Assembly: GCA_965644265.1 (NCBI GenBank)
Contig: OZ286467.1
Coordinates: 63,302,001-63,366,000, forward strand
Direction: 5' to 3'
DNA length: 64,000 bases
Source: Glycera tridactyla
Taxonomy: Eukaryota
In this document: positions 1 through 63,820 of the stretch, in pieces
Position numbering within the stretch: the stretch's first letter is position 1
How the letters are laid out: each line of letters begins with the position of its first letter
The notes under the pieces: generated by a model
Database searches by the model: none
Seen by the model: the letters and a program-made list of their open reading frames with translations, nothing else
Told to the model about the DNA's origin: nothing
Translations under genes and position numbers: made by a program

Positions 1-79
1 AGTAACTGCTCACTGGAGATGAGTGTGATATTTCCAGGATGCTCAGCAAGAGTAACTGCTCCCAGGAGACGAGTGTGAT
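1..79. repeat. Two imperfect 29-bp direct repeats, 50-bp period
   Basis: agtaactgctcactggagatgagtgtgat (1-29) vs agtaactgctcccaggagacgagtgtgat (51-79). Confidence 0.8.
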
Positions 80-181
80 TTAGATAAACAGAGCCGCGAT
101 CAAGTAGCGTCCGTAGCAACCGAGACAACGAAGTGTGACGGAGAATAAACGTAATTCCACCACTGACAATGTCACCAAATC

Positions 182-570
182 GATTCGAATTCTCTCTAAT
201 GCATTGCGAGAGCGTAAACAAACTATCGCAATCAGGAATCTACTCGCGCAATACGTACGGGAGTCGAACACACGATTATATCATCCAGCCGGGACTGCCG
301 GCAGCGTAGACGACGTTTAGCCGGGATTGCGTGCCAGTCTACCGGCAGCGCTTCCGACCGTCTGGCCAAAGAGACCATCCAACGCGCGATCCTGATTCGA
401 ATTCTCTCTAATGCATTGCGAACCCGTAAACAAACCTATCTGTCGCGCAATGAAAAATTGACGAACCGCCGACTGGATAATCAGACTGCGAACCGTACCC
501 AACCGGCCACCGAAACTATCGTTGACACCACTCACATTTATCTCCAATGCATTGCGAGACGTGAACAAAC
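182..570. repeat. Dispersed direct repeat: two copies with a 28-bp identical core plus one partial copy
   Basis: gattcgaattctctctaatgcattgcga at 182-209 and 394-421, each followed by cgtaaacaaac; partial aatgcattgcgagacgtgaacaaac at 546-570. Confidence 0.85.
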
Positions 571-678
571 ATTTCCGCGTTCCGCCGATCAACACGATCG
601 GAGCTGTCAACTCATACTGATATGAAATTCACAGACACACTACATTGACCACTACATGTAGGCGTCATTTCAACACTT

Positions 679-717
679 CAAATCACATCAAATCACATCA
701 AATCACAATAATCACAC
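679..717. repeat. 10-bp minisatellite (aaatcacatc) x ~3.5
   Basis: Direct reading: caaatcacatcaaatcacatcaaatcacaataatcacac. Confidence 0.8.
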
Positions 718-1192
718 TCTATGCCTCCACCCCCGGTCACGGCGATCACCGCACACGCGCGAGCGTGCGTACCCAACGCAACTGTCACTTTCTTACTATT
801 TGTTCGCAAAACTATCCAATAGAACAATCCGAGATCATGTTAGATCCTAGTCTGTAAACAAACAATTATGATCCAATGCTCGAAATCGCAATCGCGGATA
901 GCCGTAGGCCTCGTAATATCGACGAATTACGGAGCCCAGGTATTCCTCAACCTTCTCGTACAACGCGAAGTTGAAAAATACACAGAGTACTCGGTAGTTG
1001 CTAGGGACAACAACAACAGTCCCACCTGCCATCTGGAGGAACTACCGGCGGCCGGGAGGGACACCCCTAAATAGGATATTTATTGTTTTAATGTTCGCAC
1101 GTAGGCCTATCGGCCCGGGGAATGCTAAATTTGAGGGAGAAATGGTACAGATAGATCTAATTTTACTTAATGTTCATCCTCTTTGCTTTCAG

Positions 1193-1216
1193 AAGCACCA
1201 GCAGTAGGTACCACAG
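1193..1216 (+). CDS. Unit 1 micro-exon A (24 nt): EAPAVGTT
   Basis: ctttgctttcag|AAGCACCAGCAGTAGGTACCACAG|gtatgt. Confidence 0.88.
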
Positions 1217-4200
1217 GTATGTAAACACCAGATTCTATTTTTTGCCGTCAGTAGTACCAACCTCGCCAAATTGATCAAATTGACCAATATATGATATCAT
1301 CATCCATCATTTTCCTATGTGTATTCCGATTCATTCCAGGGCAAAGAAGCATGAGAGCAACAATAATTAGTTCCGGATTCTATAGTTGATCATCTATTCT
1401 CCCAAGTCTGTCCTAAAGATATTGGTACTCCAGATTGATCAGGTGCATCTCGAAAAATATATGTTGGCTATTTCATTCAAATGCAATGGATCATCACTGA
1501 CTTTGCATATGTGAGCCTCATCACAATCGACATTCATATGTCATTCGATCAAGTCGAAAATGCGAAAAAACTATTCATGGATGGCCATTTCATCAAAAAT
1601 TCTGTCACTCCAAAATATTATTATAATAATTTATCTTACTCACTTTGTTATCTGTGTCTACTTACAGCAGCCCCAGGAGCACCTACAACAGGTACGTGAA
1701 CACCAACAAAATGCGCAAGTGATTTCCCGTTTTCGATTTCATCATTGTTGGACTGTACCTGTATGTCCCAATCACATCTGTGGTCCATGGGCATAGACAG
1801 CAAGGTATTGAGTGTCATCGATGGAATTGGTCTAATAGAGATGGTGCCCATATGGATATATGGATGTATTGAGCACCCTCCTACTTTTGATCCTATTTTA
1901 TATTTGTATACTTCTAAGAATCACTCTTCACTCATTCCACCTTCCTCTGTATCTCAACTGCTTCATATATAATGACAAAATACTTTTTGAAGACCAATAT
2001 TACTGAATGTTCATCCTTTTTGCTTTCAGAAGCCCCAGCAGTGGCTACCACAGGTATGTTTACACCAGTTGTTATTAATTGCCATCATTGGTACCAACCG
2101 CTCAGTATTGATCAAACTAATCCATATATAGAATTTCATTATCGTTCATTTTTCCATGCATATCCTGATTCATTTCCTGGCCGAGAGGCATGACAGAAAA
2201 TAAAGAAAATTCTGAATTTGATACCATCTTTCAAATTTCACTGTGCTCATATGGATTTGCAACTCAATATTGCACTCTATCTTCTGACCATATCGTGTTC
2301 ATGTGCCCTCCAAAGTATGTGCAAAAGATATCGGCTCTTGGTATTGAAAGTGTGCATCTGAAAAAATATATGTTGACTAAGCCATTCAAATGAAAGGAAT
2401 TATTGATGGATGGCCACTAAACTGATAATCTGTGGTTTATAGGACATGAAGGTGTCGAGGGTCACTGTATGATCATCATGTAAAGGCTGTCTTCAATGTT
2501 ATCAGGATATCAGAGAATGACATAAATGACATTCTTTTTTTTTGTTTTTTGCAGGACCAGCAGCAACAACAGCAGGTACAAAAAGTGAAAAGGACGTAGA
2601 CCAGGAATACAAATACTTTCGACCCACTACTCCTCTCATTTGCCAAGATGAGGCATATTACAATTCTTTGCTGACGATAATACCGATGGAATGTAAACAA
2701 ATGATAATTGGAGAGCCAAGGTATTCTGTCATTGACTTGAAGTCAATGCCGATGGTGGTTAAACAAATAGTCCCACCTGAAGGAAAATATGTTACTCTTC
2801 ATCTGGTCATTGTTCCACTGTTTCCCTTGATTTGTCTTTTTTATCCCTTGTGCACCTCATCCACCTCAGTCATCCCTGAATCTTCAAGCAAGGGGACACA
2901 TCATCATGTTCAATTATTCGAGTCTATCTATCAAGTGAATGTCGTATTTGATACCATGCATGGCAAGGCACAAATCTGGATTCAAGCACTTGGCAAGGTA
3001 ATATTTCAGAAGCTAGATCTTCGAAAAGAATGGAAGGGCTGTGCTAAGATCATATTGTCATAGATGCAATAGGCACTTTGCCTAATGCATCATCGAAGAA
3101 TATCACGACAGTTTGCTCGACACAGGCAGGGGCATGAAATCCTAATTTTATTACTCAGATACTTCTCGACATGTCCTGTATTTATGTCAGCTAAAGAACA
3201 TGTTGAATCTCTCTTTTGCCCATGTAGGACTGACACCATTTGCTGGAGGCGAAGAACTGACAACGACAGCAGCTGAAGAGGAGGAAGAAGTCTTCACAAC
3301 TGGTAGGTTTGATGTCGAAAGCATGCTCTTGATGTATATTCTGCATTCGTCATATGAATCTTCATATCAAAAACTTCCACTTGAAGTATTCAATATCCAA
3401 TTGAATTTTCCAAAATGTTGTATATTTTTGCACACCTTCACGACAGATTTTACTTCTCTTCTATTTTAAACCCTAGTATGTTATCACAAGCCACATCTGA
3501 GTTACTGGAGTCAAATTCCTAGTCTATACGGGATATGTTTAACAATATTAGTAGAATGAGTTTCAATACTGATAGTCTTTCATGAGTTGACACTTTTCAT
3601 TCAAAAATGTCAGTGCACTCTCATTTTCGAATATGCCTGATGGTAGATTTCATGCCTCATGAAGTCAATATCCCAGCTGCTGTGAAATCATTGAGAGACA
3701 ACATTGAGAGAAAATTTCGAGAGAGAGTTTGAAACGAATGGGATTCTCGGTGCTCAATCAATCACTTTTTACAACCGTGGTGACTAGCACAAAGGATTGT
3801 TGGTCAACAGTTGATACCTCTTCAGAACTTTGATTCATTCTACTTACCTACATACCCATCGATTTCAAAATTGATGCATGTGTCCTGTTTGAGAATATCG
3901 GAGGAAGGATGACCTTCACTGAATATTTATCTTCATTGCTTTCAGGAGCACCAGCAGCTGCAACCACAGGTATGTTGACACCAGTTGTTATTCATGGTCG
4001 TCAGTTGTACCAACCTCACCAAATAGATCAAAATGACGCATATATTTGCTTACATCATCGTTTCAAATGGATTGGGCTCCCTTCTTATTCTGATCATGTT
4101 TTATTTGTGCATACTTTTGAGACCTATCCATCATTCATTACACCTACTTGTATATCTCATTCGTTCCAATAAAAAAGCAGAATACTTTGGAAGGACTAAT

Positions 4201-7200
4201 TTTACTGAATGATCATCTTCTTTGCTTTCAGAAGCACCAGAGGTACCCACCACAGGTATGCATACACAAGTTGTTATCAATTGCTGTCAGTTGTGCAGAC
4301 CCCACCAAATCTATCACAAATGGACCTATATATATATGATTTCATCACCGTTCATTTGTCGATGCAAATCCCAATTCATTCACAGGCCAAGACCCATGAG
4401 AGCACATATATGGTTGTGAATTAAACATCTTTAATATTTCAATGTGTATATCGGGAAATGCAACTCGATTGAGCACTCCATCCTCCAACCTTTCCTCCAT
4501 CTGCTCGCTCAAGTCTGTCTGAAAAACATTGGCTCTGAAGATTGGAGGGTCATATCTAAAAAATATATTGAGCAGTCAATTCAAATGAAATGGATCACCA
4601 ATAACATTGAGTATATGAGACTCATCCATGTGATTATCCATATGTCAATATATGGAGTCAAAAATGTTGAAATTATTGACGTATGGCTTCTTGACCGAAA
4701 ATTCCGTCCCTTTGAAATATCATTACAATGGTTGACCTATCTGACTCTGTATCTTTGTCTACTTCCAGCAGCCCCGGGAGCACCAACAACAGGTACGTGA
4801 ACACCAATTAGAATCGATATTTGATTCTACTAAATAAGCAAAATGAATACCCAGTCTCGATTTCATCATTGTTTGACTGTACTTGAAGGTACAAATCAAA
4901 TCTGTTAACATGGAAGGATTGAGATTCAATGTTGGTATTCGTCCCGGGGAGATAGTGCTTTCATGGATGTGTGGATGGAATGAGCACCCTCCTCATGCTG
5001 ATCATATTTCAATTTCTTATACTGCTGAGAACCATGCTTCATCCATTTCACCCATATCTATAGCAGTAGCTACCACAGGTATGTTACACCAGTTGTCATT
5101 TATTGCCATCAGTTGTACCAACCTCTCCATATTGATCAAACTAATCAATATGTACAATTTCATCATCGTTTCTTTGTCCATACGTATCCTGATTCATTTC
5201 CTAGGCGAGAGGCATGACAGCGAATATATAGACTTCATCCACTCCACCCACATCTATATCTCAGCCATTCAAATGATAATGCAGAATTACTTTGATAGAA
5301 CTAATTCTACTTAATATTCACACTCTTTGCTTTCAGAAGCCCCAGCAGCAGCTACCACAGGTATGTTCACACAAGTTGTTATCTTTTGCGGTCAGTTGTA
5401 CCAACCTCTCTGTAGTGATCAAACTAATCGATATATAGAATTTTATCATCGTTTATTTGTCCATACGTATCCTGAATCATTTCCTAGGCAAGAGGCATGA
5501 CAGGGAATATATAGACTTCATCCACTTCACCCACATCTATATCTCATCCATTCAAATGATAATGCAGAATTACTTTGGGAGAACTAATTTTACTTAATGT
5601 TCATCCTCTTTGCTTTCAGAAGCACCAGCAGTAGGTACCACAGGTATGTAAACACCAGATTCTATTTATTGCCATCAGTGGTACCAACCTCGCAAAATTG
5701 ATCAAATGGACCAATATATGATATCATCATCCATCATTTTCCCATGTGTATTCCGATTCGTTCCAGGGCAAAGAAGCATGAGAGCAACAATAATTAGTTC
5801 TGGATTCCATAGTTGATCATCTATTCTCCCAAGTCTGTCCTAAAGATATTGGTACTCCAGATTGATCAGGTGCATCTCGAGAAATATATGTTGACTATTT
5901 CATTCAAACGCAATGGATCATCACTGACTTTGTGTATATGAGCCTCATCACACTCGACATTCATATGTCATTCGATCAAGTAGAAAATGTGGAAAACTAT
6001 TCATGGATGGCCATTTTATCAAAAATTCTCGCACTCCAAGATATCATTATAATAGTTTATCTTACTCACTTTGTTATCTGTGTCTACTTACAGCAGCCCC
6101 AGGAGCACCTACGACAGGTACGTGAACACCAACAAAATGAGCAAGTGATTACCCATTTTCGATTTCATCATTGTTGGACTGTACCTGTATGTCCCGATCA
6201 CATCTGTGGTCCATGGGCATAGACAGCAAGGTATTGAGTGTCATCGATGGAATTGGTCTAATAGAGATGGTGCCCATATGGATATATGGATGAATTGAGC
6301 ACCCTCCTACTTTTGATCCTATTTATATTTATATACTTCTAAGAATCACTCTTCACTCATTCTACCTTCCTCTGTATCTCAACTGCTTCATAAATAATGC
6401 CGAAATACTTTTTGAAGACCAATAGTACTGAATGTTCATCCTTTTTGCTTTCAGAAGCCCCAGCAGTAGCTACCACAGGTATGTTTACACCAGTTGTTAT
6501 TAATTGCCATCAGTGGTACCACCAACTGCTCAGTATTGATCAAACTAATCCATATATAGGATTTCATTGTCGTTCATTTTTCCATGCATATCCTGATTAA
6601 TTTCCTGGCCGAGAGGCATGACAGAAAATAAAGAAAGTTCTGAATTTGATACCATCTTTCAAATTTCACTGTGCTCATATGGATATGCAACTCAATATTG
6701 CACTCTATCTTCTGACCATATCGTGTTCATGTGCCCTCCCAAGTATGTGCAAAAGATATCGGCTCTTGGTATTGAAGGTGTGCATCTGAAAAAATATATG
6801 TTGACTAAGCCATTCAAATAAAAGGAATTATTGATGGATGGCCACCTAACTGATAATCTGTGGTTTTTAGGACATGAAGGTGTCGAGTGTCACTGTATGA
6901 TCATCATGTAAAGGCTGTCTTCAATGTTATCAGGATATCAGAGAATGACATGAATGACATTCTTTTTTTTGTTTTTTTCGCAGGACCAGCAGCAACAACA
7001 GCAGGTACGAAAAGTAAAAAGGACGTAGACCAGGAATACAAATACTTTCAACCCACTACTCCTCTCATTTGCCAAGATGAGGCATATTACAATTCTTAGC
7101 TGATGATAATACTGATGCAATGTAAACAAATGATAATTGGAGAGTCAAGGTATTCTGTCATTGACTTGAAGTCAATGCCGATGGTGGTTAAACAAATAGT

Positions 7201-10200
7201 CCCACCTGAAGGAAAATATGTTACTTTTCATCTGGTCATTGTTCCACTGTTTCCCTTGATTTGTCTTTTATTATCCCTGGTGCACCTCATCCACCTCAGT
7301 AATCCCTGAATCTTCAAGCAAGTAGACACATCATCATGTTCAATTATATGAGTCTATCTATCAAGTGAATGTCGTATATGATAACGTGCATGGCAAGGCA
7401 CAAATCTAGAATCAGGCACTTGGCAAGGTAATATTTCAGAATCTAGATCTTCAAAAAGAATGGAAGGGCTGTGCTAAGATCATATTGTCATAGATGCAAT
7501 AGGCACTTTGCCTAATGCATCATCGAAAAATATCACGACAGTTTGCTCGACACAGGGATATGAAATCCAAATTTTATTACTCAGATACTTCTCGACATGT
7601 CCTGTATCCATGTCAGCTAAAGAACATGTTGAATCTCTCTTTTGCCCATGTAGGACTGACACCATTTGCTGGAGGCGAAGAACTGACAACGACAGCAGCT
7701 GAAGAGGAGGAAGAAGTCTTCACAACTGGTAGGTTTGATGTCAAAAGCATGCTCTTGATGTATATTCTGCATTCGTCATATGAATCTTCATATCAAAAAC
7801 TTCCACTTGAAGTATTCAATATCCAATTGAATTTTCCAAAATGTTGTATATTTTTTCAAACCTTCGCAACAGATTTTACTTCTCTTCTATTTTCAACCCT
7901 AGTATGTTATCACAAGCCACATCTGAGTTACTGGAGTCAAATTCCTAGTCTATACGGAATATGTTTGACAACTTTAGTAGAATGAGTTTCAATACTGATA
8001 GTCTTTCATGAGTTGACACTTTTCATTCAAAAATGTCAGTGCACTCTCATTTTCGAATATGCCTGATGGTAGATTTCATGCCCCATGAAGTCAATATCCC
8101 AGCTGCTGTAAAAGCATTGAGAGACAACATTGAGAGAAAATTTCGAGAGAGAGTTTGAAACAAATGGGATTCTCGGTGCTCAATCAATCACTTCTTACAA
8201 CCATGGTGACTAGCACGAAGGATTGTTGGCCAACAGTTGATACCTCTCCAGAACTTTGATTCATCCTACTTACCTACGTACCCATCGATTTCAAAATTGA
8301 TGCATGTGTCCTGTTTGAGAATATCAGAGGAAGGATGACCTTCACTGAATATTCATCTTCATTGCTTTCAGGAGCACCAGCAGCTGCAACCACAGGTATG
8401 TTGACACCAGTTGTTATTCATGGTCGTCAGTTGTACCAACCTCACCAAATTGATCAAAATGATGCATATATTTGCTTCCATCATCGTTCCAAATGGATTG
8501 GGCTCCCTTCTTATTCTGATCATGTTTTATTTGTGCATACTTTTGAGACCTATCCATCATTTATTACACCTACTTGTATATCTCATTCGTTCCAATAAAA
8601 AAGCAGAATACTTTGGAAGGACTAATTTTACTGAATGATCATCTTCTTTGCTTTCAGAAGCACCAGAAGTACCCACCACAGTTATGCATACACAAGTTGT
8701 TATCAATTACTGTCAGTTGTGCAGACCCTACCAAATCTATCACAAATGGACCTATATATATATGATTTCATCACCGCTCATTTGTCCATGCAAATCCCAA
8801 TTCATTCACAGGCCAAGACCCATGAGAGCACATATATGGTTGTGAATTAAACATCTTTAATATTTCAATGTGTATATCGGGAAATGCAACCTGATTGAGC
8901 ACTCCATCCTCCGACTTTTCCTCTATCTGCTCTCTCAAGTCTGTCTGAAAGACATTGGCTCTGAAGATTGAAGGGTCGTATCTAAAAAAAATATTGAGCA
9001 GTCAATTCAAATGAAATGGATCACCAATAACATTGAGTATATGAGACTCATCCATGTGATTATCCATATGTCAATATATGGAGTCAAAAATGTTGAAATT
9101 ATTGACGTATGGCTTCTTGACCGAAAATTCCGTCCCTTTGAAATATCATTACAATGGTTGACCTATCTGACTCTGTATCTTTGTCCACTTCCAGCAGCCC
9201 CGGGAGCACCAACAACAGGTACGTGAACACCAATTAGAATCGATATTTGATTCTACTAAATAAGCAAAATGAATACCCAGTCTCGATTTCATCATTGTTT
9301 GACTGTACTTGAAGGTACAAATCAAATCTGTTAACATGGAAGGATTGAGATTCAATGTTGGTATTCGTCCCGGGGAGATAGTGCTTTCATTGATGTGTGG
9401 ATGGAATTAGCACCCTCCTCATGCTGATCATATTTCAATTTCTTATACTGCTGAGAACCATGCTTCATCCATTTCACCCATATCTATAGCAGTAGCTACC
9501 ACAGGTATGTTACACCAGTTGTCATTTTTTGCCATCAGTTGTACCAACCTCTCCATATTGATCAAACTAATCAATATGTACAATTTCATCATCGTTTCTT
9601 TGTCCATACGTATCCTGATTCATTTCCTAGGCGAGAGGCATGACAGCGAATATATAGACTTCATCCACTCCACCCACATCTATATCTCAGCCATTCAAAT
9701 GATAATGCAGAATTACTTTGATAGAACTAATTTCACTTAATATTCACCCTCTTTGCTTTCAGAAGCCCCAGCAGCAGCTACCACAGGTATGTTCACACAA
9801 GTTGTTATCTTTTGCGGTCAGTTGTACCAACCTCTCTGTAGTGATCAAACTAATCGATATATAGAATTTTATCATCGTTTATTTGTCCATACGTATCCTG
9901 AATCATTTCCTAGGCAAGAGGCATGACAGGGAATATATAGACTTCATCCACTTCACCCACATCTATATCTCATCCATTCAAATGATAATGCAGAATTACT
10001 TTGGGAGAACTAATTTTACTTAATGTTCATCCTCTTTGCTTTCAGAAGCACCAGCAGTAGGTACCACAGGTATGTAAACACCAGATTCTATTTATTGCCA
10101 TCAGTGGTACCAACCTCGCAAAATTGATCAAATGGACCAATATATGATATCATCATCCATCATTTTCCCATGTGTATTCCGATTCGTTCCAGGGCAAAGA

Positions 10201-52200: not shown

Positions 52201-55200
52201 TAGTCTTTCATGAGTTGACACTTTTCATTCAAAAATGTCAGTGCACTCTCATTTACGAATATGCCTGATGGTAGATTTCATGCCTCATGAAGTCACTATC
52301 CCAGCTGCTGTGAAATCATTGAGAGACAACATTGAGAGAAAATTTAGAGAGAGAGTTTGAAACAGATGGGATTCTCGGTGCTCAATCAATCACTTTTTAC
52401 AACCTTATCGACTAGCACAAAGGATTGTTGGCCAACAGTTGATACCTCTTCAGAACTTTGATTCATCCTACTTACCTACTTACCCATCGATTTAAGAATT
52501 GATGCATGTGTCCTGTTTGAGAATATCGGAGGAAGGATGACCTTCACTGAATATTCATCTTCATTGCTTTCAGGAGCACCAGCAGCTGCAACCACAGGTA
52601 TGTTGACACCAGTTGTTATTCATGGTCGTCAGTTGTACCAACCTCACCAAATTGATCAAAATGACGCATATATTTGCTTCCATCATCGTTCCAAATGGAT
52701 TGGGCTCCCTTCTTATTCTGATCATGTTTAATTTGTGTATACTTTTGAGACCTATCCATCATTCATTACACCTACTCGTATATCTCATTCATTCCAATAA
52801 TAATGCAAAATACTTTGGAAGGACTAATTTTACTGAATGATCATCTTCTTTGCTTTCAGAAGCACCAGAAGTACCCACCACAGGTATGTATACACAAGTT
52901 GTTATCAATTGCTGTCAGTTGTGCAGACCCCACCAAATTTATCACAAATGGACCTATATATATATGATTTCATCACCGTTCATTTGTCCATGCAGATCCT
53001 GATTCATTCACAGGCCAAGACCCATGAGAGCACATATATGGTTGTGAATAAAACATCGTCAATATTTCGATGTGCATATCTGGAAATGCAACTCGATTGA
53101 GCACTCTATCTTCCGACCTTTTCTCTATCTTCTCTCTCGAGTCTGTCTGAAAGACATTGGCTCTAAATATTGAAGGGTTGTATTTAAAAAAATATATTGA
53201 GCAGTCAATTCAAATGAAATGGATCACCAATAACATTGAGTATATGAGACTCATCCATGTGATTATCCCTATGTCAATATATGGAGTCGAAAATGTGGAA
53301 ATTATTGACGTATGGCCTCTCGACTTGAAATTCTGTCCCTTTGAAATATCATTACAATGGTTGACCTATCTGACTCTGTATCTTTGTCTACTTCCAGCAG
53401 CCCCAGGAGCACCAACAACAGGTACGTGAACACCAATTAGAATCGATATTTGATTCTAATAAATGAGCAAAATGAATACTCATTTCCGATTTCATCATTG
53501 TCGGACTGTACTTGAATGTACAAATCAAATCTGTGAACATGGAAGGATTGAGGTTCACTGTTGGAATTCGTCTCGGGGAGATGGTGCTTTCATGGATGTG
53601 TGGATGAAATGAGCACCCTCCTCATGCTGATCATATTTTAATTTCTTATTCTGCTGAGAACCATGCTTCATCCATTTCACCCATATCTATAGCAGTAGCT
53701 ACCACAGGTATGTTACACCAGTTGTTATTTATTGCCATCAGTTGTGCCAACCTCTCCATATTGATCAAACTAATCAATATATACAATTTCATCATCGTTT
53801 ATTTGTCCATACGTATCCTGATTCATTTCCTAGTCGAGAAACATGACAGCGAATATATAGACATCATCCACTTCACCCACATCTATATCTCAGCCATTCA
53901 AATGATAATGCGGAATTACTTTGGTAGAACTAATTCTACTTAATGTTCATCCTCTTTGCTTTCAGAAGCCCCAGCAGCAGCTACCACAGGTTAATTCAAT
54001 ACCGTGCTTCTCCTTCAAATTAAGCATTTGCCCTCGGCTAACTGCCCACGCTCGAACTTCACAACATAAGTGAAGATTTTCCAAAAGTACTCCCCCTCCG
54101 ATCCGCACCAATATCCCCGAAGAGGATCCCCTTCGGCGGATGTAAACATACGCGCATCCGCACCTGCGCACTTCGTATTTTTTCGCTTCGCTTTGCTCAG
54201 CAATCACGCGTTGAAATACCTCGGCTCTTTTTCAGGATTATTCTTGATATTTCAAGCCCGCGTTCATTCTATTGTATTATTCATGTTTACGGCGTTCTTG
54301 CGCCACTTATTCACTCAGCGCCGACGCCGTATATAGTGTGTAATTCGTGTAGTTAGACGGGCCAATTTCGGGTGCCCTGGCACCCGGCGTTGTCCGGTGA
54401 CGCTCTGCGTTGTCAGACTGCAGGAAGCACTTTCGTCGTGCGTAGTGAATTTACAGTGAACTGTAGTTGTGTTCACTACACCTTATTTTGTTTATTCTTC
54501 CATGAAACGCTGTCACTCCAATTGTTGCGTTTCATGAGAATTGTTCATTTTGTCCGGTGATACAACGTGTTGACTTTGTTGCACATTTGAAATGACCTAT
54601 CCCAGCATAGGTTTGTGATTTTCATATCATTACAGGTGCTCTATAACAACCATGTCGTCAGGACAAAAGCTTGGCCTATGTGGCCATTTTGTAGCTGCTT
54701 GGGACCAGCACCCGGTTTGCCCATCTTGTAGACCATGTGGAAAACCGAGTGAAGATTCAGAACAGAATGTTGTATGCAACATTTGTAGTGAGTGGTCTCA
54801 GGAGCAGTGGGACCGTTTTCAGTCTAGGCGTACTTACAAATCCAAAAATAGGTCGCCTTCAGTTAGCTCTTCACAGTCTGAAAAATCTCATTCAGTTAAA
54901 TCCTTCAAGCTCAAAACCGCGTCAGTGAAAGTTGAAAGGTTGGCTGAATCAACTTGTGTTGAGTTAGGTCCTACATCTAAGAAAGCTAGGCAAACTCAGT
55001 CAGCTTTAGCTAGATTGGCCGATGCTTCTAGTGAGTCAGAAAACAGTGCGTCTGATCAACCGATGAGCTCTGTCCGTCCGTCACCTAGATCTTATTCTGA
55101 GGCTCTCAGACAGACAGTTAGTCATTCTCCTAAAGTTTCTTTCAAGACACCTTGTTTGACATCCTTAGGTAACACTTCTAGGATTCAAAAGAGAGTTTCT

Positions 55201-58200
55201 AAGAAGATCACGACTCACAGTAGCTCTTCTGACAAGGAGGTGAATCTGGAAGTCCCGTCCATTGCGGTGTCTGTTCAGAAGTCACCGGACACTGGAAACT
55301 TATGTAAGGAGGATTTTAATTGTTCTCCGGCTAAGTCGACAGTGTCCAGTCATGAAGAGAGGCATACGGACACTGTGTCCGGTGCACTGAGCCCTACACA
55401 ACTTGTAGTATTCAACTCAGACGATGAAGCTGACTCATCTGTCCGTGGTCCGGTCGATGTATTGCCAGTACTGCCGGCCAATGAAGTCAGCTCTCAGTTA
55501 GAGTTACTAGAAACTAGTCAGATTGATTCCCCTAAATCAGTCCGTTCAAGTTCTAGCAGCAGAATATCCGGGGTTCAGTTTGTTGTTAAATTGGACAACA
55601 AGACTTCTCTATCTGATCAGAGTAAGACTGCACTGGGAAGTCTTCTCAATACTTCCGTGGGTTTTTCTTTGTTTGACAAACATTTCACTGCTTCATACAA
55701 GAAGAGTCAATGTTCATTATCAGATAGGTTTGTGGAGAAACAAAATCCAGTTATTCCTAGAGTGACCTCCCCTCAGGTGGTTCTAACTCAGGATGAGTCC
55801 GGTAGGACCAGGAAATCTTGTCCGTTGAGTATTCAACCAGTGTTGACAAAATCAATTGTGTCTGCTTAATCTCAGTCTAGTAAACAGACCACAGCAATTC
55901 CAGGCATATCTCAGCTTAAACTGACTTCTGATGTCCATACAACTCAGTCTAAGTCTCAAACTCAGTCTAAGACATCTAGCTCATCGGACAAACTTAAAAC
56001 TGGTTCTTCGGACAAACCTAAATCTGGTTCTTCCGACAACCCAAGGTCTGGTTCTTCGGGAAAACCTAAATCTGGTTCTTCGGTTAAACCAAAATCTGGT
56101 TCTTCGGTTAAACCAAAATCTGGTTCTTCGGACAAACCGAAATCTGGTTCTTCAGACAAGCCAAGATCCGACAAACCAAAATCTGGTTCTTCAAAAACTT
56201 CTGGGACTCAACATTCATCTAAGTCCAAGCCACCGGACAAATCTAAGTCTGGTCCACCGGACAAAGGGAAACCCATTTCTCAGAGTGTTAAGCTTAAACC
56301 AGTTCTATCTCAGACAAAGATTGCTCCTAGAATGACTGTAGCGCAGGTTATTCAGCAACAGATAGGTCAGGTTCCTACGCCAGGAGCTGTTCAAACTGTT
56401 ATGTCCGGTATGTCCGGTAACCAGAGTATATTACCAGGTATATTTGGTTCAGAATCGGATAACGAGTCAGACGTTAAGTCTTTATCAGAAAGTGATCCTA
56501 ATTCTAGTGGAAACCCTACTTCAGGACTGCCAATGGGCAGGCCCGCAGCTACAGGATCGCCTAAAAAGATTCCGCATATTATTCCCTCAGTTATACCTGA
56601 TCCAACTGTGATTCAGAATGCTACTCAACAAAGAACTCTGATTGACATTCTAGACTGGTGGTCAGCCAATAAACCGTCTCAGACTGCCCCTGTAGCTAGG
56701 GTTCCATCCCCTAAACTCATCCCACACACTGCCACAAGTCAGTCACCTGTTCAGATGGGTCCTCCCCAACAGGTGGTGCTAGATCCTTCTGCTAGGCTAA
56801 TTCTGGCCAAAGTAGAAGCGATGAGAGAAGAGTTTAAGGAGGTAAAGGAGGCATGCAGAAAGAGACCTTTGGAAGAAGGTGACTCAATGCATTCTTCTCA
56901 ATCAGAGGCAACAGAGAATCAAGCTCCGGTGCATAAAAAGCGGATGAAAGCCTTTAGGAAATATGCAGCGGAGTCGCTGGCACAATATGTTCCCCAACCT
57001 GATCCAGCCAGTAGAGGAAATCTTGGGGGTATAACAGCTAGCAAGGTGGACACTTCATTTGCGGCAGAAACTAGGACTAAGGATGTAGAGTTTCAGTCAG
57101 AGTCATCTTTACCTCTATCCCCTCTCTTGGTAAATGTGCAGAAGATTCTGGACGCAGCCTTACAGGGTGAGGAAAAAGATGAACCACCTCAATCAGTTAA
57201 TACTCCTCTTAGTGAGTTTGTATTAGGAGAGGGAGGTCAAGCTGAGGCTATGTCAAGGACATTTAAACCTAGTTTCCCAAAATTCTATGGTTGCAATCCT
57301 CAGGTTTATAAAATACGTGCTGGAGCAACCAAAGCAGACTATTTGGTCAGTCCACCTACTCTAGATTCGGAGTATGCATCTCATGGGGGGACGGCTACCA
57401 TAAATGATGTGAAACCTTCTCAAGATGAGTTTATGTTGAGAGATTGTCTGAAAATAATCTCTTATATAGATATGGCTCTCGCTGCAGGTGTCACAGCGAC
57501 GGAAGACGAAGTACTTGATTCTGCTGAAGTCAGACAGAAAGCCAGAGACTCTATGAGAGTAGGGGTTAGAGCTATAGATCACTTAGCCTCACTTATTGCC
57601 AAAGTCTCGGGAAATTTGGAATTAAATCGACGTTCCAATGCCTTGAAGTCTCTGCCCTTCGATGATAGAACCAAGGCTCAATTGAGAGTTCTTCCATTAG
57701 GTCACTCCACTCTCTTCGCGGGTAGACTTGATGATGCTTTTGATCGCTCATCGGAAATCCAACGTAAAAGAAGAGAGATGGAACACGATTATGAAAGGTC
57801 GAAATCCAAGAAGCAAACTGAGTCCAAATCGGGAGCTCATCAGGAAGCTTCTACTTCTAAGTCTTGGAGGAAGTCTTCTGGTAGGAGAGGAGGAAATTCT
57901 GGCAGAGGCAGAGGAAGAGGCAGAGGGCAACAGCAGAAATCGTCTGACAATCAAAACAGTCAGAATCAGACTCAGAATAAATCTGAGACCCCCAGGTTCT
58001 TCAGTAAGAAAAGGGGTCGAGGTCGTGGTTCTAAGCCCTAGGATGGGGGGCGTCACTTCCCAATTTCTAGTGGGTGCAAGACTACAGAATTTTGTAGCAG
58101 CTTGGCAGAGCATAACAAACAATCAGTTCATTTTAGACATGATCAGAGAGGGATTAACTTGGACCTTTCAAAATCCACCTGTGCTATCGACAAAATGGCT

Positions 58201-61200
58201 TCCTTTTTCTCTACCGAGGGTAGGGAATCCAAAAAGAGAGGCCCTTCTAGAAGAAATTCGCATGATGTTGGAAAAGAAGGCCATTTCCCCTATTATACCA
58301 GATCAGTCACCAGGATTCTACAGCCGGATATTTCTGGTAACCAAGTCCACAGGGGGTTATCGACCGATAATCAATTTGAAACCTCTGAACCAATATATAT
58401 TCAATCAGAGGTTCAAAATGGAAACAACGAGGTCGATAGTGAAAGCCGTATCACAAGGAGATTGGACAGTGTCCATAGATCTCAAAGATGCGTACTTTCA
58501 CGTACCCATCCATGTGGACTTCCAGAAGTATCTGCGCTTTGCTCTGTCTCCGACGGAAGGCTACGAATTTCATGCTCTCCCGTTCGGATTGTGCTCTGCC
58601 CCTTGAGTCTTCACTATGCTAGTTCGAGAGGTGGCGCAACACCTTCATATGAAAGGGATAAAATTCCACTATTACCTGGACGACTGGTTGCTCAGGCACC
58701 AGGACCCGAAACAGCTTCAGATACATCTGACCTACACTTTGGCATTAATTCGCAAGTTAGGTTGGATAGTAAACGAAATGAAGTCAGATCTTATTCCAAG
58801 CCAAACATTCGTTTACCTGGGCATGGACTTCAACACGTCCTTGTCCCTGGTTCGTCCTACCCTCAAGCGAGTTCAGAAACTAGAGGGTTGGGTGAGGCTG
58901 TTTCGGAGAGTGCGAATACAACCAGCTCGTTCAGTCCTCAGACTTCTAGGACATATGTCCAGCCTTTCAGACACTATTCGTCTGGGGCGACTCCACATGA
59001 GACCACTTTAGTTGGCTCTTCTCAGCCAGTGGAGTCCGTTCCAGGACGATCCAGACCAGTTTGTTCTGTTACCAGACGAGGTTCTTCTAGATCTTCTCTG
59101 GTGGAGCGATCGGAGACACTCTTTAGAAGGAGTTCCATTGGTGATACCAGAACCATCATTAACTCTAATGACGGATGCGTCTCTGGTAGGGTGGGGAGCC
59201 CACATGGTGAAAGATGGTTTTCGTCGGGAAGTGTCAGGCTTATGGCCGGAACACTACAAGGACAGGTCGATAAACTCCCTGGAGCTGGAAGCCATTCTTC
59301 TAGCAATACAGGAGTTTTGTTTGATGATGTCCAACCAAGTAGTGCTGGTTTTGTCGGACAGTTCCACGGCTGTGGCCTATCTAAGCAATCAAGGAGGCAC
59401 CCAGTCTTCCCTCCTGTGTGGACTAACATGGAAAGTGTTCAAGAAGACGGAAGCACACAACATTTCTCTTCGTGCGAGACATATACCCGGCAAGAGAAAT
59501 GTGCTAGCCGACTCATTGTCAAGAACCTCTCCAGTCCAGACAGAATGGGAGCTCCTTCAATCAGTGTTCAACAGGATAGTTCAGAAGCTCAACCTCTCTC
59601 CGACAGTGGATCTGATGGCGACACCTTACAACAAGAAGCTGCCAGTGTTCGTGTGTCCCTTTCCAGAAGCAACAGCACTGGCAGTAGACGCGCTGTCAAT
59701 GTCGTGGGAGGGGCTAGGAGTAGCATACATTTTTCCCCCAACATCCATGATTCGCGATGTTCTGAACAAGCTGAGAGGGACAGATCTAATAATGATATGC
59801 ATAGCTCCCTGGTGGAAGAACCAATCTTGGTTCGTAGATCTGCTAGAAATGTCAATAGACTTACCCCTAGAGCTTCCACTTCCTCGGAACATTCTAACAC
59901 AGAAAGTGTCAGGCAAACTGGTCAACCACTTCCGACCCCAGGTGCTGAATCTTCACGCCTGGTGTCTATCCGGAGTAACCTCTCCAGAAAAGGTTTTTCA
60001 GCAGAGGCAGTCGAGCGCATCTCTCGACCTACACGCCAATCCACAGCCAGAGTGTATGATGGCCGATGGGTACGCTGGGAATCTTGTTGCTCCCAGCATC
60101 AAGTGGATAAAGAGCGTCCTGCTATGAATTTAGTAGCTGACTTCCTTCTTTCTCTTTGGAATTCAGGAATGGCTTATGAAACTATTAAAGGCTATCGATC
60201 GGCAATCAATTCAGTGTTGTCTCGCTCTGGTATAAGAATCGCGGATTCTTCTGAAATTAATGACTTGCTGAAGAACTTTGCTCTGGAGAGGCCAGTGCTT
60301 CATAAATCAATTCCTCAGTGGAATTTACCGTTGGTCTTATCGTACCTTCGCTTTCACCCTTTTGAACCAGTGGAAGAAATATCTCTTCCTTACCTGGCTA
60401 AAAAGGCTGCCTTTTTGATAGCACTGGCCTCCGGTAGACGCCGGAGTGAGATTCATGCACTCTCGGGTCTTCCGGATTCCGTTAGATTCTCTCGAGATTT
60501 ATCCAAGGTCTCGCTCATTTGTGAACCTGGTTTCCTCTCTAAGAATCAGAAGCCTGACGGACAGTCTCCGATAATTCAGATTCCAGCCTTGAAGATTACC
60601 CAAGGGGTATCTCAAGCTGACCGATTACTTTGCCCGGTCAGGGCATTGGAATGTTTTTACAGACGGTCTTTACCCGGTCGGGGTAATCGCCGTAAACTGT
60701 TTTATGATCCTTCTTCATTGTTGGATAAGGACATGCGTGTGGATCGCATTTCCAGATGGGTACAAGACATCGTCAAGGGTGCATATTTGGCATCAGGACT
60801 TGATCCTGATTCTATTGGAGATCATGTTTCGGCTCATGAGCTCAGAGCCTTTTCAGCCTCTTGGCGCATGTTTAACCGTTCTTGTTCCTTGGAAGAAGTT
60901 ATGAGATCAGCTTTTTGGCGATCTCGTTCTACTTTTGGAACATATTACCTGAGGGACATGTGTGGCCAGGCAATGGACCTTTACTCTTTGGGACCCATTG
61001 TAGCTGATCAAGCTGTAATAGTTCCTCCTGACTAGTTTTTCAGTATTCTGAAATAAGTCATATTTGTATAGGTAGTACCCACCATCCGTGTCTTATTCGG
61101 ATGCTTAATTTGAAGGAGAAGCACGGTATTGAATTAACCGAAACCCAGGTTTTTCTAACCTGGGGGTTAATACTATACCTGCTTCTCCTTCAAATCTGAT

Positions 61201-63820
61201 TCTCCCTCCCGTCCTCCCCGCACTATTGTTGTGGTGTGTATATACGAAGTGCGCAGGTGCGGATGCGCGTATGTTTACATCCGCCGAAGGGGATCCTCTT
61301 CGGGGATATTGGTGCGGATCGGAGGGGGAGTACTTTTGGAAAATCTTCACTTATGTTGTGAAGTTCGAGCGTGGGCAGTTAGCCGAGGGCAAATGCTTAA
61401 TTTGAAGGAGAAGCAGGTATAGTATTAACCCCCAGGTTAGAAAAACCTGGGTTTCGGTATGTTCACACAAGTTGTTATCTTTTGCGGTCAGTTGTAACAA
61501 CCTCTCTGTAGTGATCAAACTGAACGATATATAGAATTTCATCATCGTGTATTTGTCCATACGTATCCTAAATCATTTCCTAGGCGAGAGGCATGACCGG
61601 GGATATATAGACTTCATCCACTTCACCCACATCTATATCTCATCCATTCAAATGATAATGCAGAATTACTTTGGGAGAACTAATTTTACCTAATGTTCAT
61701 CCTCTTTGCTTTCAGAAGCACCAGCAGTAGTTACCACAGGTATGTAAACACCAGATTCTATTTATTGCCGTCAGTAGTACCAACCACGCCAAATTGATCA
61801 AATGGACCAACATATGATATCATCATCCATCATTTTCCCATGTGTATTCCGATTCGTTCCAGGGCAAAGAAGCATGAGAGCAACAATAATTAGTTCTGGA
61901 TTCTATAGTTGATCATCTATTCTCCCAAGTCTGTCCTAAAGATATTGGTACTCTAGATTGATCAGGTGCATCTCGAAAAATATATGTTGACTATTTCATT
62001 CCAATGCAATGGATCATCACTGACTTTGCATATATGAGCCTCATCACATTCGACATTCATATGTCATTCGATCAAGTCAAAAATGTGGAATATTATTCAT
62101 GGATGGCCATTTTATCAAAAATTCTGTCACTCCAAAATATTATTACAATAATTTATCTTACTTACCTTGTTATCTGTGTCTACTTACAGCAGCCCCAGGA
62201 GCACCTACAACAGGTACGTGAACACCAACAAAATGAGCAAGTGATTACCCATTTTCGATTTCATCATTGTTGGACTGTACCTGTATGTCCCAATCACATC
62301 CGTGGTCCATGGGCATAGACAGCAAGGTATTGAGTGTCATCTATGGAATCGGTCTAATAGAGATGGTGCCCATATGAATATATGGATGAATCCAGCACCC
62401 TCCTACTTTTGATCCTATTTTATATTTGTATACTTCTATGAATCACTCTTCACTCATTCTACCTTTCTCTGTATCTCAACTGCTGAAAAAATAATGCCAA
62501 AATACTTTTTGAAGATCAATACTACTGAATGTTCATCCTCTTTGCTTTCAGAAGCCCCGGCAGTAGCTACCACAGGTATGTTTACACCAGTTGTTATTTA
62601 TTGCCATCAGTGGTACCAACCTCTCAGTATTGATCGAACTAATCCATATATAGAATTCCATTATCCTTCATTTTTCCATGCATATCCTGATTCATTTCCT
62701 GGCCGAGAGGCATGACAGAAAATAAAGAAAGTTCTGAATTTGATACCATCTTTCGACTTTCACTGTGCTCATATGGATATGCAACTCAATATTGCACTTT
62801 ATCTTCTGACCATATCGTGTTCATGTGCCCTCTAAAGTATCTGCAAAAGATATCGGCTCTTGGTATTGAAGGTGTGCATCTGAAAAAATATATGTTGACT
62901 AAGCCATTCAAATGAAAGGAATTATTGATGGATGGCCACTAAACTGATAATCTGTGGTTTATGAGACATGAAGGTGTCGAGTGTCACTGTGTGATCATTA
63001 TGTAAAGGCTGTCTTCAATGTTATTAGGATATCAGAGAATGACATGATTGAAATTCATTTTTTTTGCAGGACCAGCAGCAACAACAGCAGGTACGAAAAG
63101 TAAAAAGGATGTAGACCAGGAATACAAATACTTTCAACCTACTACTCCTCTCATTTGCCAAGATGAGGCATATTACAATTTTTTGCTGATGATAATACCG
63201 ATGGAATGTGAACAAATGATAATTGGAGAGTCGAATGTATTCTGTCATTGACTTGAAGTCAAGGCCGATGGTGGTTAAACAGATAGTTCCACCTGAAGAA
63301 AATATGTTACCTTTTATCTGGTCATTGTTCCACTGTTTCCCTTGTTTCGTCTTTTTTTATCATCCCTGGTGCACCTCATCCCTCTCAGTCATCCCTGAAT
63401 CTTCAAGCAAGGGGACACATCATCATGTCCAATTATATGAGTCTATCTATCAAGTGAATGTCGTATATGATACTGTGCATGGCAAGGCACATATCTGGAT
63501 TCGAGCACTTGGCAAGTTAATATTTCAGAAGCTAGATCTTCAAAAAGAATGGAAGGGCTGTGCTAAGATCATATTGTCATAGATGAAATAGGCACTTCGC
63601 CTGATGCATCATCAAAGAATATCACGACAGTTTGCTGGACACAGGGATATGAAATCTAAATCTCATTTTTACTCAGATACTTCTCGACATGTCCTGTATT
63701 TATGTCAGCTAAAGAGCATGTTGAATCTCTCTTTTGCACATTTAGGACTGACACCATTTGCTGGAGGTGAAGAACTGACAACGACAGCAGCTGAAGAGGA
63801 GGAAGAAGGCTTCACAACTG
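1193..63820 (+). CDS. Internal portion of a multi-micro-exon gene encoding a mucin-like Ala/Thr/Pro/Glu-rich repeat protein (~93 aa per unit, ~1170 aa in window; no start or stop visible)
   Basis: Ten exon types per unit, each with a pyrimidine tract + AG and a GT donor (gtatgt/gtatgc/gtacgt/gtacga/gtaggt). All lengths are multiples of 3, all phase 1, and no stops occur in the joined frame. Most exon variants noticed between units are synonymous. Confidence 0.88.
1668..1691 (+). CDS. Unit 1 micro-exon B (24 nt): AAPGAPTT
   Basis: gtctacttacag|CAGCCCCAGGAGCACCTACAACAG|gtacgt; NAGNAG acceptor. Confidence 0.87.
2030..2053 (+). CDS. Unit 1 micro-exon C (24 nt): EAPAVATT
   Basis: tttttgctttcag|AAGCCCCAGCAGTGGCTACCACAG|gtatgt. 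Confidence 0.88.
2555..2575 (+). CDS. Unit 1 micro-exon D (21 nt): GPAATTA
   Basis: Long T tract ..tttgttttttgcag|GACCAGCAGCAACAACAGCAG|gtacaa (gtacga in other units). Confidence 0.85.
3228..3302 (+). CDS. Unit 1 exon E (75 nt): GLTPFAGGEELTTTAAEEEEEVFTT
   Basis: ctcttttgcccatgtag|GACTGACACC...TTCACAACTG|gtaggt. Copies start at 7654, 12077, 16499, 20925, 25349, 29772, 34195, 38619, 43029, 47444, 51859, 63746. Confidence 0.88.
3946..3969 (+). CDS. Unit 1 micro-exon F (24 nt): GAPAAATT
   Basis: cttcattgctttcag|GAGCACCAGCAGCTGCAACCACAG|gtatgt. Confidence 0.88.
4232..4255 (+). CDS. Unit 1 micro-exon G (24 nt): EAPEVPTT
   Basis: cttctttgctttcag|AAGCACCAGAGGTACCCACCACAG|gtatgc. Confidence 0.86.
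4769..4792 (+). CDS. Unit 1 micro-exon H (24 nt): AAPGAPTT
   Basis: ctttgtctacttccag|CAGCCCCGGGAGCACCAACAACAG|gtacgt; paralog of exon B. Confidence 0.87.
5064..5078 (+). CDS. Unit 1 candidate micro-exon I (15 nt): AVATT
   Basis: cccatatctatag|CAGTAGCTACCACAG|gtatgt; equals the last 15 nt of a C-type exon; weak pyrimidine tract. Confidence 0.55.
5337..5360 (+). CDS. Unit 1 micro-exon J (24 nt): EAPAAATT
   Basis: ctctttgctttcag|AAGCCCCAGCAGCAGCTACCACAG|gtatgt. Confidence 0.88.
5620..10045 (+). repeat. Array unit 2 (4426 bp); exon G donor mutated
   Basis: Exons A 5620, B 6094, C 6455, D 6984, E 7654, F 8372, G 8658. Confidence 0.97.
10046..14468 (+). repeat. Array unit 3 (4423 bp)
   Basis: A 10046, E 12077; exon F donor variant gtgtgt. 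Confidence 0.97.
14469..18890 (+). repeat. Array unit 4 (4422 bp)
   Basis: A 14469, E 16499; unit-1-like C-E introns. Confidence 0.97.
18891..23316 (+). repeat. Array unit 5 (4426 bp); exon G donor mutated
   Basis: A 18891, E 20925, G 21929; near-copy of unit 2 through exon H. Confidence 0.97.
23317..27740 (+). repeat. Array unit 6 (4424 bp)
   Basis: A 23317, E 25349. Confidence 0.97.
27741..32163 (+). repeat. Array unit 7 (4423 bp)
   Basis: A 27741, E 29772. Confidence 0.97.
32164..36586 (+). repeat. Array unit 8 (4423 bp)
   Basis: A 32164, E 34195; near-identical to unit 7. Confidence 0.97.
36587..41007 (+). repeat. Array unit 9 (4421 bp); hybrid between the two unit subfamilies
   Basis: A 36587, E 38619; type-I sequence up to ~37.9 kb, type-II variants from ~38.1 kb. 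Confidence 0.95.
41008..45418 (+). repeat. Array unit 10 (4411 bp), subfamily II
   Basis: A 41008 (EAPAVVTT), E 43029; 4-bp intron deletion before exon B. Confidence 0.97.
45419..49833 (+). repeat. Array unit 11 (4415 bp), subfamily II
   Basis: A 45419, E 47444. Confidence 0.97.
53989..54178 (+). repeat. DIRS left ITR
   Basis: 54005-54178 is the reverse complement of 61242-61415 (174 bp); the outermost ~16 bp differ from the right ITR, as expected for DIRS non-identical ITRs. Confidence 0.96.
54611..54635 (+). promoter_or_regulatory. Candidate 3' splice acceptor / conserved leader motif 16 nt upstream of gag ATG
   Basis: gtttgtgattttcatatcattacag|gtgctctataacaaccATG; the core is shared with 615-636 (minus strand). 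Confidence 0.4.
54652..58041 (+). pseudogene. gag: DIRS ORF1 (gag-like), 1129 codons with one in-frame TAA at 55867-55869
   Basis: Track ORFs 54652-55869 and 56332-58041 share a frame, and 55870-56331 is open in it. N-terminal Cys/His cluster (CGHF..HPVCPSC..C..CNIC), central Ser/Lys low-complexity region, C-terminal RR..L..LP....LFAG motif of DIRS gag type, RG-rich tail. Confidence 0.85.
55981..56193 (+). repeat. 24-nt coding repeat (SSDKPKSG) x ~8-9 within gag
   Basis: tct tcg gac aaa cct aaa tct ggt and variants, in the gag frame. Confidence 0.9.
58043..60127 (+). pseudogene. pol: DIRS pol: reverse transcriptase - RNase H - adenine methyltransferase-like, two in-frame stops (58604-58606 TGA, 59009-59011 TAG)
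   Basis: Track ORFs 57728-58606, 58616-59011 and 59012-60127 share a frame. Motifs: VGARLQNF, YSRIFLVTK..GGYRPIINLK, IDLKDAYFHVPI, LPFGLCSAP*VFT, YLDDWL, TDASLVGWG, INSLELEA, SDSSTAVAY, HIPGKRNVLADSLSR, DLMA..N, YIFPP, APWW..QSWF. Probable ATG at 58043 follows the gag stop by one base. Confidence 0.93.
58102..61035 (+). CDS. DIRS tyrosine recombinase ORF (977 aa open frame; recombinase domain in the C-terminal ~340 aa)
   Basis: ALASGRRRSEIHAL, LCPVRAL, HELRAFSAS, FWRS..TFGTYYLRD fit the R..HxxR..W..Y catalytic set; the N-terminal ~675 codons overlap pol in another frame; the true start is uncertain. Confidence 0.93.
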   Translation: MAEHNKQSVHFRHDQRGINLDLSKSTCAIDKMASFFSTEGRESKKRGPSRRNSHDVGKEGHFPYYTRSVTRILQPDISGNQVHRGLSTDNQFETSEPIYIQSEVQNGNNEVDSESRITRRLDSVHRSQRCVLSRTHPCGLPEVSALCSVSDGRLRISCSPVRIVLCPLSLHYASSRGGATPSYERDKIPLLPGRLVAQAPGPETASDTSDLHFGINSQVRLDSKRNEVRSYSKPNIRLPGHGLQHVLVPGSSYPQASSETRGLGEAVSESANTTSSFSPQTSRTYVQPFRHYSSGATPHETTLVGSSQPVESVPGRSRPVCSVTRRGSSRSSLVERSETLFRRSSIGDTRTIINSNDGCVSGRVGSPHGERWFSSGSVRLMAGTLQGQVDKLPGAGSHSSSNTGVLFDDVQPSSAGFVGQFHGCGLSKQSRRHPVFPPVWTNMESVQEDGSTQHFSSCETYTRQEKCASRLIVKNLSSPDRMGAPSISVQQDSSEAQPLSDSGSDGDTLQQEAASVRVSLSRSNSTGSRRAVNVVGGARSSIHFSPNIHDSRCSEQAERDRSNNDMHSSLVEEPILVRRSARNVNRLTPRASTSSEHSNTESVRQTGQPLPTPGAESSRLVSIRSNLSRKGFSAEAVERISRPTRQSTARVYDGRWVRWESCCSQHQVDKERPAMNLVADFLLSLWNSGMAYETIKGYRSAINSVLSRSGIRIADSSEINDLLKNFALERPVLHKSIPQWNLPLVLSYLRFHPFEPVEEISLPYLAKKAAFLIALASGRRRSEIHALSGLPDSVRFSRDLSKVSLICEPGFLSKNQKPDGQSPIIQIPALKITQGVSQADRLLCPVRALECFYRRSLPGRGNRRKLFYDPSSLLDKDMRVDRISRWVQDIVKGAYLASGLDPDSIGDHVSAHELRAFSASWRMFNRSCSLEEVMRSAFWRSRSTFGTYYLRDMCGQAMDLYSLGPIVADQAVIVPPD
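61101..61195. other. DIRS internal complementary region (ICR)
   Basis: 61101-61139 is the reverse complement of 53989-54027; 61137-61195 is the reverse complement of 61400-61458; the halves overlap at acc (= GGT). Confidence 0.96.
61242..61458 (-). repeat. DIRS right ITR plus right extension
   Basis: ITR 61242-61430; extension 61431-61455 contains hairpin cccaggtt-agaaa-aacctggg. Confidence 0.95.

Follow-up and report, generated by a model that had tools for sequence, protein, structure and literature searches.

A complete antisense DIRS1-like retrotransposon in a micro-exon array gene of Glycera tridactyla, probably placed by the target preference of its family

Introduction

DIRS1-like retrotransposons have ITRs, two adjacent internal complementary regions that match the termini, and a right extension; they carry gag, overlapping tyrosine recombinase (YR) and RT/RNase H/methyltransferase (RT/RH/MT) frames, with a long ORF overlap, and make no target-site duplication (Piednoel et al. 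2011; PMC3266345). Their circular junction is usually 3 bp long and typically NTT (PMC3266345). An identical target trinucleotide is typical of almost all annotated members, although it is not strictly defining. Integration has been modelled through such a 3-bp junction, with an essential role for the internal complementary region (ICR; PMC3266345, PMC7192593), and Cappello's model of DIRS replication is summarised in the same two papers (PMC7192593, PMC3266345). In Dictyostelium, DIRS cDNA is mostly linear and single-stranded (PMC7192593). Target choice by DIRS elements is experimentally unexamined, according to PMC7192593.

The element described here, which we call EL2, shares the structural features listed by Piednoel et al., with an open frame in the gag position and a long overlap of the frames. 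It is DIRS1-like in its ITRs, ICR, right extension, RT/RNase H/Dam-like region, tyrosine recombinase and lack of target-site duplication, and departs from that kind only in the usual trinucleotide junction. The two halves of its ICR overlap by 1 nt, a G, instead of 3 bp, and its target does not repeat a trinucleotide of the element: the shared G is followed by TT or TC in the target versus AT in the element. EL2 starts with GAT, and most targets read GTT, a discrepancy like the unequal GTT/GAT termini entered for TnDIRS1a in Table 3 of PMC3266345. At 8.2 kb, EL2 is also longer than the examples of 5.5-6.3 kb in those rows of the paper's table that were compared. Ngaro and PAT elements likewise combine a tyrosine recombinase with RT/RNase H and make no target duplication (PMC3266345). 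However, Ngaro and Viper are without a methyltransferase domain and usually without ORF overlaps (PMC3266345), whereas EL2 has a Dam-like region, and in PAT-like and Ngaro elements the boundaries consist of direct repeats in series (PMC7192593), whereas EL2 has ITRs and an ICR.

We analysed a window of 64,000 nucleotides (contig OZ286467.1 of assembly GCA_965644265.1, positions 63,302,001 to 63,366,000, forward strand). Its first 1157 bases are the 5' (left-ITR) end of a complete antisense DIRS1-like element inside a micro-exon array gene. The placement of the element is very probably due to the target preference of its family, with its proximity to splice signals a by-product.

Results

The window contains no N and comes from a 2.04-Gb assembly; the 20 kb of DNA before it were examined as well (L012 and L011, where an L011 position equals the window coordinate plus 10000). 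Most of the window is a higher-order tandem array with a period of 4423 bp and sub-repeats of 283 bp. The micro-exons of the array are in-frame, near-identical cassettes of 24 nt, each with G as its last base, a pyrimidine tract-AG before it and GTAYG after it, and the donor reads CAG/GT throughout. The J-A-type intron makes up 259 of the 4423 bp of a unit (5.9%).

A full DIRS1-like element, EL1, lies farther downstream in the window, and a 21-mer of its ITR recurs there with 0-1 mismatches at 54008-54028 (minus strand), 61100-61120 (plus) and 61392-61412 (plus). A sequence-only reading of the window had noticed a 19/21 match to this ITR at 1121-1141 and an 11/14 match at 1093-1106 at similar spacing. 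Both matches are real. The first is the 21-mer with two mismatches, and 100 dinucleotide-preserving shuffles gave an expectation of no 19/21 match; the second lies 28 nt upstream of the first, compared to 29 nt in EL1. With relaxed BLAST settings, 1084-1141 aligns to both EL1 ITRs (71% over 59 nt). That reading had also proposed a check, by which upstream DNA devoid of DIRS ORFs, ICR and a matching ITR, and without resumption of the array, would speak against it. ORFs, ICR and matching right ITR are all present upstream, and beyond them the array continues to the exact base.

The last array base before the insert, at window position -7069, corresponds to reference base 5584, and the first one after it, at 1158, to base 5585, where the sequence reads TAATTTTAC; homology to the array is absent over 1-1152, and BLAST starts vary between 1153 and 1158. 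Once the intervening 8226 bp are excised in silico, no gap is needed at the junction to align the host with an empty paralogue. Comparison of the occupied site to at least 12 empty paralogous sites shows neither a target-site duplication nor a loss of host bases. The sole ambiguity at the junction is one C, which is single in the empty site (…GAGAAC/TAATT…) and can be assigned to either side of the insert.

Within these limits, EL2 has the anatomy of a whole element (Table 1). The 94-nt ICR (nt 7875-7968) consists of the reverse complement of nt 1-37 followed directly by the reverse complement of nt 8170-8226, both at 100%. The right extension measures 28 nt (nt 8199-8226), lies outside the ITR match and inside the ICR match, and contains a hairpin-like CCCAGGTT…AACCTGGG. 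In the leader, a repeat of 30-47 nt occurs in three copies that are 84-91% identical (182-227, 394-440 and 541-570); these may have a promoter/enhancer or packaging role.

Table 1. Positions of EL2, EL1 and the adjoining host features (window coordinates unless marked; e, coordinate on the strand of EL2, equal to 1158 minus the window coordinate)
Feature	Position	Strand	Remarks
EL2, antisense DIRS1-like retrotransposon, part in window	1..1157	-	element nt 1-1157 of 8226; array break at -7069, restart at 1158
EL2, remainder upstream	L011:2932-10000 (window -7068 to 0)	-	ITRs and ICR from self-comparison
EL2 non-coding leader, left ITR to ORF1	1..969	-	no ORF of at least 100 aa; ORF1 frame opens at window -246, first ATG at -312
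EL2 left ITR, element nt 1-188	970..1157	-	partner nt 8012-8198 (L011:2960-3146); 189-nt inverted match, 98.4%
Outermost 37 nt of EL2 left terminus	1121..1157	-	exact reverse complement of left half of ICR, nt 7875-7911 (L011:3247-3283); holds the 19/21 match
Junction base	1157..1157	C on plus, G on element strand	invariant first base of EL2; sole base common to circle junction and target
EL2 gag-position frame	e1404-4187	-	928 aa, open
EL2 RT/RNase H/methyltransferase frame	e4141-6285	-	715 aa, open
EL2 tyrosine-recombinase (YR) frame	e4191-7178	-	996 aa, open; overlaps the 715-aa frame by ~2.1 kb
Remaining host intron	1158..1192	+	35 nt; CTAAT-like motif with C1157, CTTAAT at 1166-1171, pyrimidine tract, AG at 1191-1192
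Micro-exon A	1193..1216	+	24 nt, EAPAVGTT in phase 1, GTATGT directly after
EL1, full DIRS1-like element of another family	53989..61458	+	GGT on both sides; on the donor site of a J-A intron
EL1 ITRs	54005-54178 / 61242-61415	inverted pair	174 nt
EL1 ICR	61101-61195	+	internal complementary region

The 928-aa frame is homologous to the first frames of EL1 (E 4e-70), and neither ORF1 nor the N-terminal 650 aa of the YR frame matched a family in Pfam. The 715-aa frame matches RVT_1 (E 1.5e-25), with RT_RNaseH (E 1e-3) and Dam (E 2.5e-3) in the expected order, both sub-threshold, and its nearest atlas clusters carry RVT_1/RT_RNaseH/Dam. The tyrosine recombinase is recognized, from moderate profile matches, in the C-terminal 340 aa of the 996-aa frame, which match the phage integrase phrog_1 at E 1.2e-7 (4.8e-6 for the EL1 counterpart); this region also matches phrog_216. 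Pfam Phage_integrase is weak (E 0.063 in EL2, 0.0084 in EL1), as is Phage_int_SAM_1, the two in the right order, and the R, HxxR, W and Y motifs are kept between the recombinase regions of EL2 and EL1. This region had no match in NCBIfam, and in a PDB sequence search it found only chance-level cutinase matches (E at least 0.05). An AlphaFold model of the recombinase C-terminus, made from a two-sequence alignment, was too poor for use (mean pLDDT 45). With its 8226 bp, EL2 is complete and apparently coding-competent.

In both EL2 (L011:3980-9754, minus strand) and EL1 (54619-61032, plus strand), the gag-position and YR frames share one reading frame and are split by a single TAG, which occupies nt 4188-4190 in EL2. 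The RT/RH/MT frame is the +1 frame across ~2.1 kb of the YR frame, and the overlapped stretch of the YR frame is open in both families at only 35% identity. This arrangement suggests that a gag-YR product may be made through stop-codon read-through or other recoding.

EL2 and EL1 have a common architecture, a conserved ITR block (…GCTWAATTTGARGGAGAA…) and the same hairpin in the right extension. Because their proteins are only 35-63% identical and their ITRs ~57% identical, the two represent different families of one DIRS1-like kind. The earlier proposal of an antisense DIRS-type element is supported. They further differ in orientation, EL1 being sense and EL2 antisense to the array, in the junction, which is a 3-bp GGT in EL1 versus 1 nt in EL2, and in the state of the frames, all of which are open in EL2, whereas in EL1 the gag-like frame is interrupted by one in-frame stop and the RT frame by two. 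The gag-position frame of EL1 also contains, at 55984-56168, a tandem repeat of 24 bp with 7.7 copies and 85% matches.

At least 40 genomic copies belong to the EL2 family. Many of these are 99-100% identical, and several on other chromosomes are 100% identical over 553 nt. Judging from these sequences, the family is young and numerous and appears recently active. The EL1 family is also young, with copies 99-100% identical. At one locus (G000:C39:25714701-25717953) and nearby on C39, between 25.7 and 26.2 Mb, EL2-family ends stand head to tail as in the circle junction, with the G-run followed directly by GATCTATC, and several copies have identical flanks. This pattern indicates tandem or nested copies together with segmental duplication of the occupied site. 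Two EL1-family copies, L057 and L065 (G000:C1, 50.52 and 50.65 Mb), sit in the same host repeat with their GGT triplets 11 bp apart, and are independent insertions at neighbouring GGTs.

Family copies also settle the exact terminus of EL2. All 30 of the other left ends begin with G followed by ATCTATC, after flanks that are unrelated and variable in their final bases, and all 17 right ends that could be paired finish in CCTGGGGGG and then at least one further G. The ICR of EL2 predicts a circle junction of seven G followed by ATC; the count of G is 1 + 7 at the occupied site and one at the empty site, and therefore circle junction and target share a single base. The terminus, which had been left ambiguous within 1150-1159, is now fixed at C1157, the base found in 30/30 other left ends. 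The earlier placement of the array restart at 1157 was right to within the 1-nt ambiguity, as C1157 is common to the element and the empty site.

The sequence-only reading had further proposed that EL2 has its own 3-bp core, TAG/CTA, in place of the GGT of EL1. The letters that it quoted for the minus-strand end are correct. However, position-matched to the EL1 GGT, this TAG is made of two host bases plus the shared G, and we rejected it as a core given that the bases before the G vary among family copies and that the ICR-defined circle junction has only the one base in common with the target. An imperfect target duplication, suggested by the 5-nt likeness of AGATC and AGAAC that extends BLAST matches to 1153, was likewise rejected, since AGAT is element sequence in the family copies. 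A GGATCT hexamer core is not required for the family, because GAT is present in the target of only 2/17 paired copies. EL1 itself follows the 3-bp rule, with one GGT in the ICR junction, GGT on both sides in the genome and one in the target.

We derived the target motif of the EL2 family from 27 non-redundant left flanks and 17 paired flanks. To the left, A is found at -8, -7 and -6 in 17/27, 23/27 and 15/27 copies (for -7, binomial P = 4e-9), and a pyrimidine occupies -5 in 22/27; positions -4 to -1 are uninformative. To the right, past the G-run, T stands at the first three positions in 14/17, 14/17 and 13/17 copies (P ~1e-5 each). The preferred target, RAAAY-N4-GTTTY, is palindrome-like: an A-rich half-site, about four bases, G, and TTT. 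Several reconstructed targets are plain inverted repeats, e.g. TGAAA-N-TTTCA and GAGAA-N-TTCTC. At EL2 itself, the paralogous empty array sites prove that both half-sites are host sequence and not part of the element. Scored with a matrix built from other family copies only, the actual site (…TAAAATTA/GTTCTC…, element strand) ranks 52 among the 8886 positions that the two strands of an array unit provide (z ~2.4), and it is a good, not the best, available target.

The EL1 family prefers a different target. GGT precedes the element in 23/24 non-redundant copies and A stands at -4 in 18/24 (P = 7e-6), a preference for A-GGT that is drawn from left flanks and from one copy, the EL1 of the window, with its right flank. 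Because every donor of the array reads CAG/GT, every donor offers an EL1-family target. As read from the flanks, two DIRS families of one genome appear to have different, readable target preferences: A-GGT in one, and A-rich-N4-G-TTT with a 1-nt crossover in the other.

The insertion of EL2 lies 35 nt before the acceptor that serves an exon-A copy. The exon upstream of it is another exon-A copy (window -7682 to -7659), owing to a 683-bp segment that is duplicated in the unit. The host had been taken for a J-A intron of ~260 bp, which holds for its last 214 nt; the first ~412 nt resemble the A-B intron, and the chimeric intron measures ~625 nt without EL2 and ~8.85 kb with it. The type of array unit switches at the insertion (window -13334 to -7069, L012/L011, versus window 1158-53000): units upstream have a 5032-bp period, in which the duplicated segment yields the second exon A and the chimeric A-B/J-A intron, and units downstream have a 4423-bp period.

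A CTAAT near the acceptor had been pointed out as a branch-point-like motif, and it is found at 1157-1161, with its putative branch A (1160) 32 nt from the end of the intron. The 35 nt that follow EL2 are 96% identical to paralogous empty sites, e.g. 5585-5619. A second candidate within these 35 nt is CTTAAT at 1166-1171, with 1169/1170 as its putative branch A. The proximal motif ACT[T/G]AAT, at a distance of 22-27 nt from the AG, recurs in 4/4 diverged intron types versus 2/4 for the distal CTAAT, and as a candidate branch point it appears at least as good; the undisturbed 35 nt may contain the whole branch point. The earlier claim that both insertions left the splice signals intact is correct for CTAAT, which is rebuilt by the terminal C of EL2. 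At EL1, the donor keeps its GT alone: GTATGT becomes GTTAAT, with loss of the +3 purine and the +5 G. The prior chance that two insertions near splice signals share the J-A intron type is ~6% or less. This is mildly unlikely, for a coincidence noticed post hoc and comprising two events.

Discussion

The comparison of EL2 to its family and to empty array sites suggests how the element would have arrived. After reverse transcription, the termini of the cDNA would be restored on the ICR, as in the published DIRS model, and the cDNA would be closed into a circle whose predicted G-run/GATC junction is the exact reverse complement of the EL2 ICR. The mostly linear, single-stranded cDNA of Dictyostelium (PMC7192593) is a point against such a circle. 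The tyrosine recombinase encoded by EL2 would then cross the circle into the chromosome at the single shared G, in a preferred host site resembling RAAAY-N4-GTTTY. Because GAT at the left junction always comes from the element, and GTT or GTC at the right junction from the host, both strand exchanges would occur at or before this G; alternatively, the recombinase may tolerate no heteroduplex beyond it. The closeness of EL2 to CTAAT and the position of EL1 on the CAG/GT donor would be by-products of these sequence preferences, without any recognition of splice signals. The sequence-only reading had implied that both insertions are tied to splicing signals, and the family preferences explain the two positions better.

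The same two positions could instead reflect survivorship, with motif-fitting insertions landing anywhere and purifying selection in an expressed array sparing those that keep the GT, branch point and acceptor usable, so that selection is a filter and not a cause. The rebuilding of CTAAT by EL2, the close match of the 35-nt acceptor region to empty paralogues (96%) and the GT retained at EL1 would all be expected from such a filter. However, the change of GTATGT to GTTAAT at EL1 is a degraded donor, and skipping one 24-nt, in-frame, near-identical cassette should cost little, which implies weak selection on any single intron. Both families are also young, with copies 99-100% identical, which leaves little time for selection, and only two insertions were observed. 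We consider this account very unlikely.

We find it very unlikely that DIRS elements are directed to the donor GT or the branch point, for example by spliceosome- or RNA-associated tethering. It is true that EL1 lies exactly on CAG/GT, that EL2 splits, or restores, a CTAAT whose distance to the acceptor is 32 nt, that both are in J-A-type intron sequence, and that the A-GGT of the EL1 family coincides with the core of the donor consensus. Yet the sequences that flank the copies examined, 24 of the EL1 family and 27 of the EL2 family, are unrelated in other respects, and they show neither an extended donor (GTRAGT) nor a pyrimidine-tract/AG context. The EL2-family motif is a palindrome and not a branch-point consensus, and EL2 left untouched the better conserved candidate, ACT[T/G]AAT.

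Inside the window alone, the lack of an ORF and the weak ITR likeness to EL1 (71%) might have suggested a dead fragment, a solo ITR or a join made in assembly. Such readings are refuted by the whole 8226-bp element upstream, with its open frames, exact ICR and a host that resumes to the base, and we give them practically no weight.

Placement by family target preference is the reading that we retain for EL2. For annotation, it means that the first 1157 bases of the window and 7 kb upstream of them are transposon and not array gene, and that the intron is ~625 nt plus 8.2 kb. The biology is otherwise ordinary: a recently active DIRS family has left one copy inside a tolerant, repetitive intron. 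Of wider use is the paired-flank evidence for family-specific target preferences of two DIRS families in one genome. We tentatively suggest, as a possibility that we hold at somewhat less than even chances, that the EL2 family departs from the identical-trinucleotide rule by using a single shared G beside the palindrome-like RAAAY-N4-GTTTY, as if a recombinase dimer read inverted half-sites in the manner of bacterial tyrosine recombinases. If this is true genome-wide, the EL2 family would be a natural data set for target choice by the tyrosine recombinase of a eukaryotic retrotransposon.
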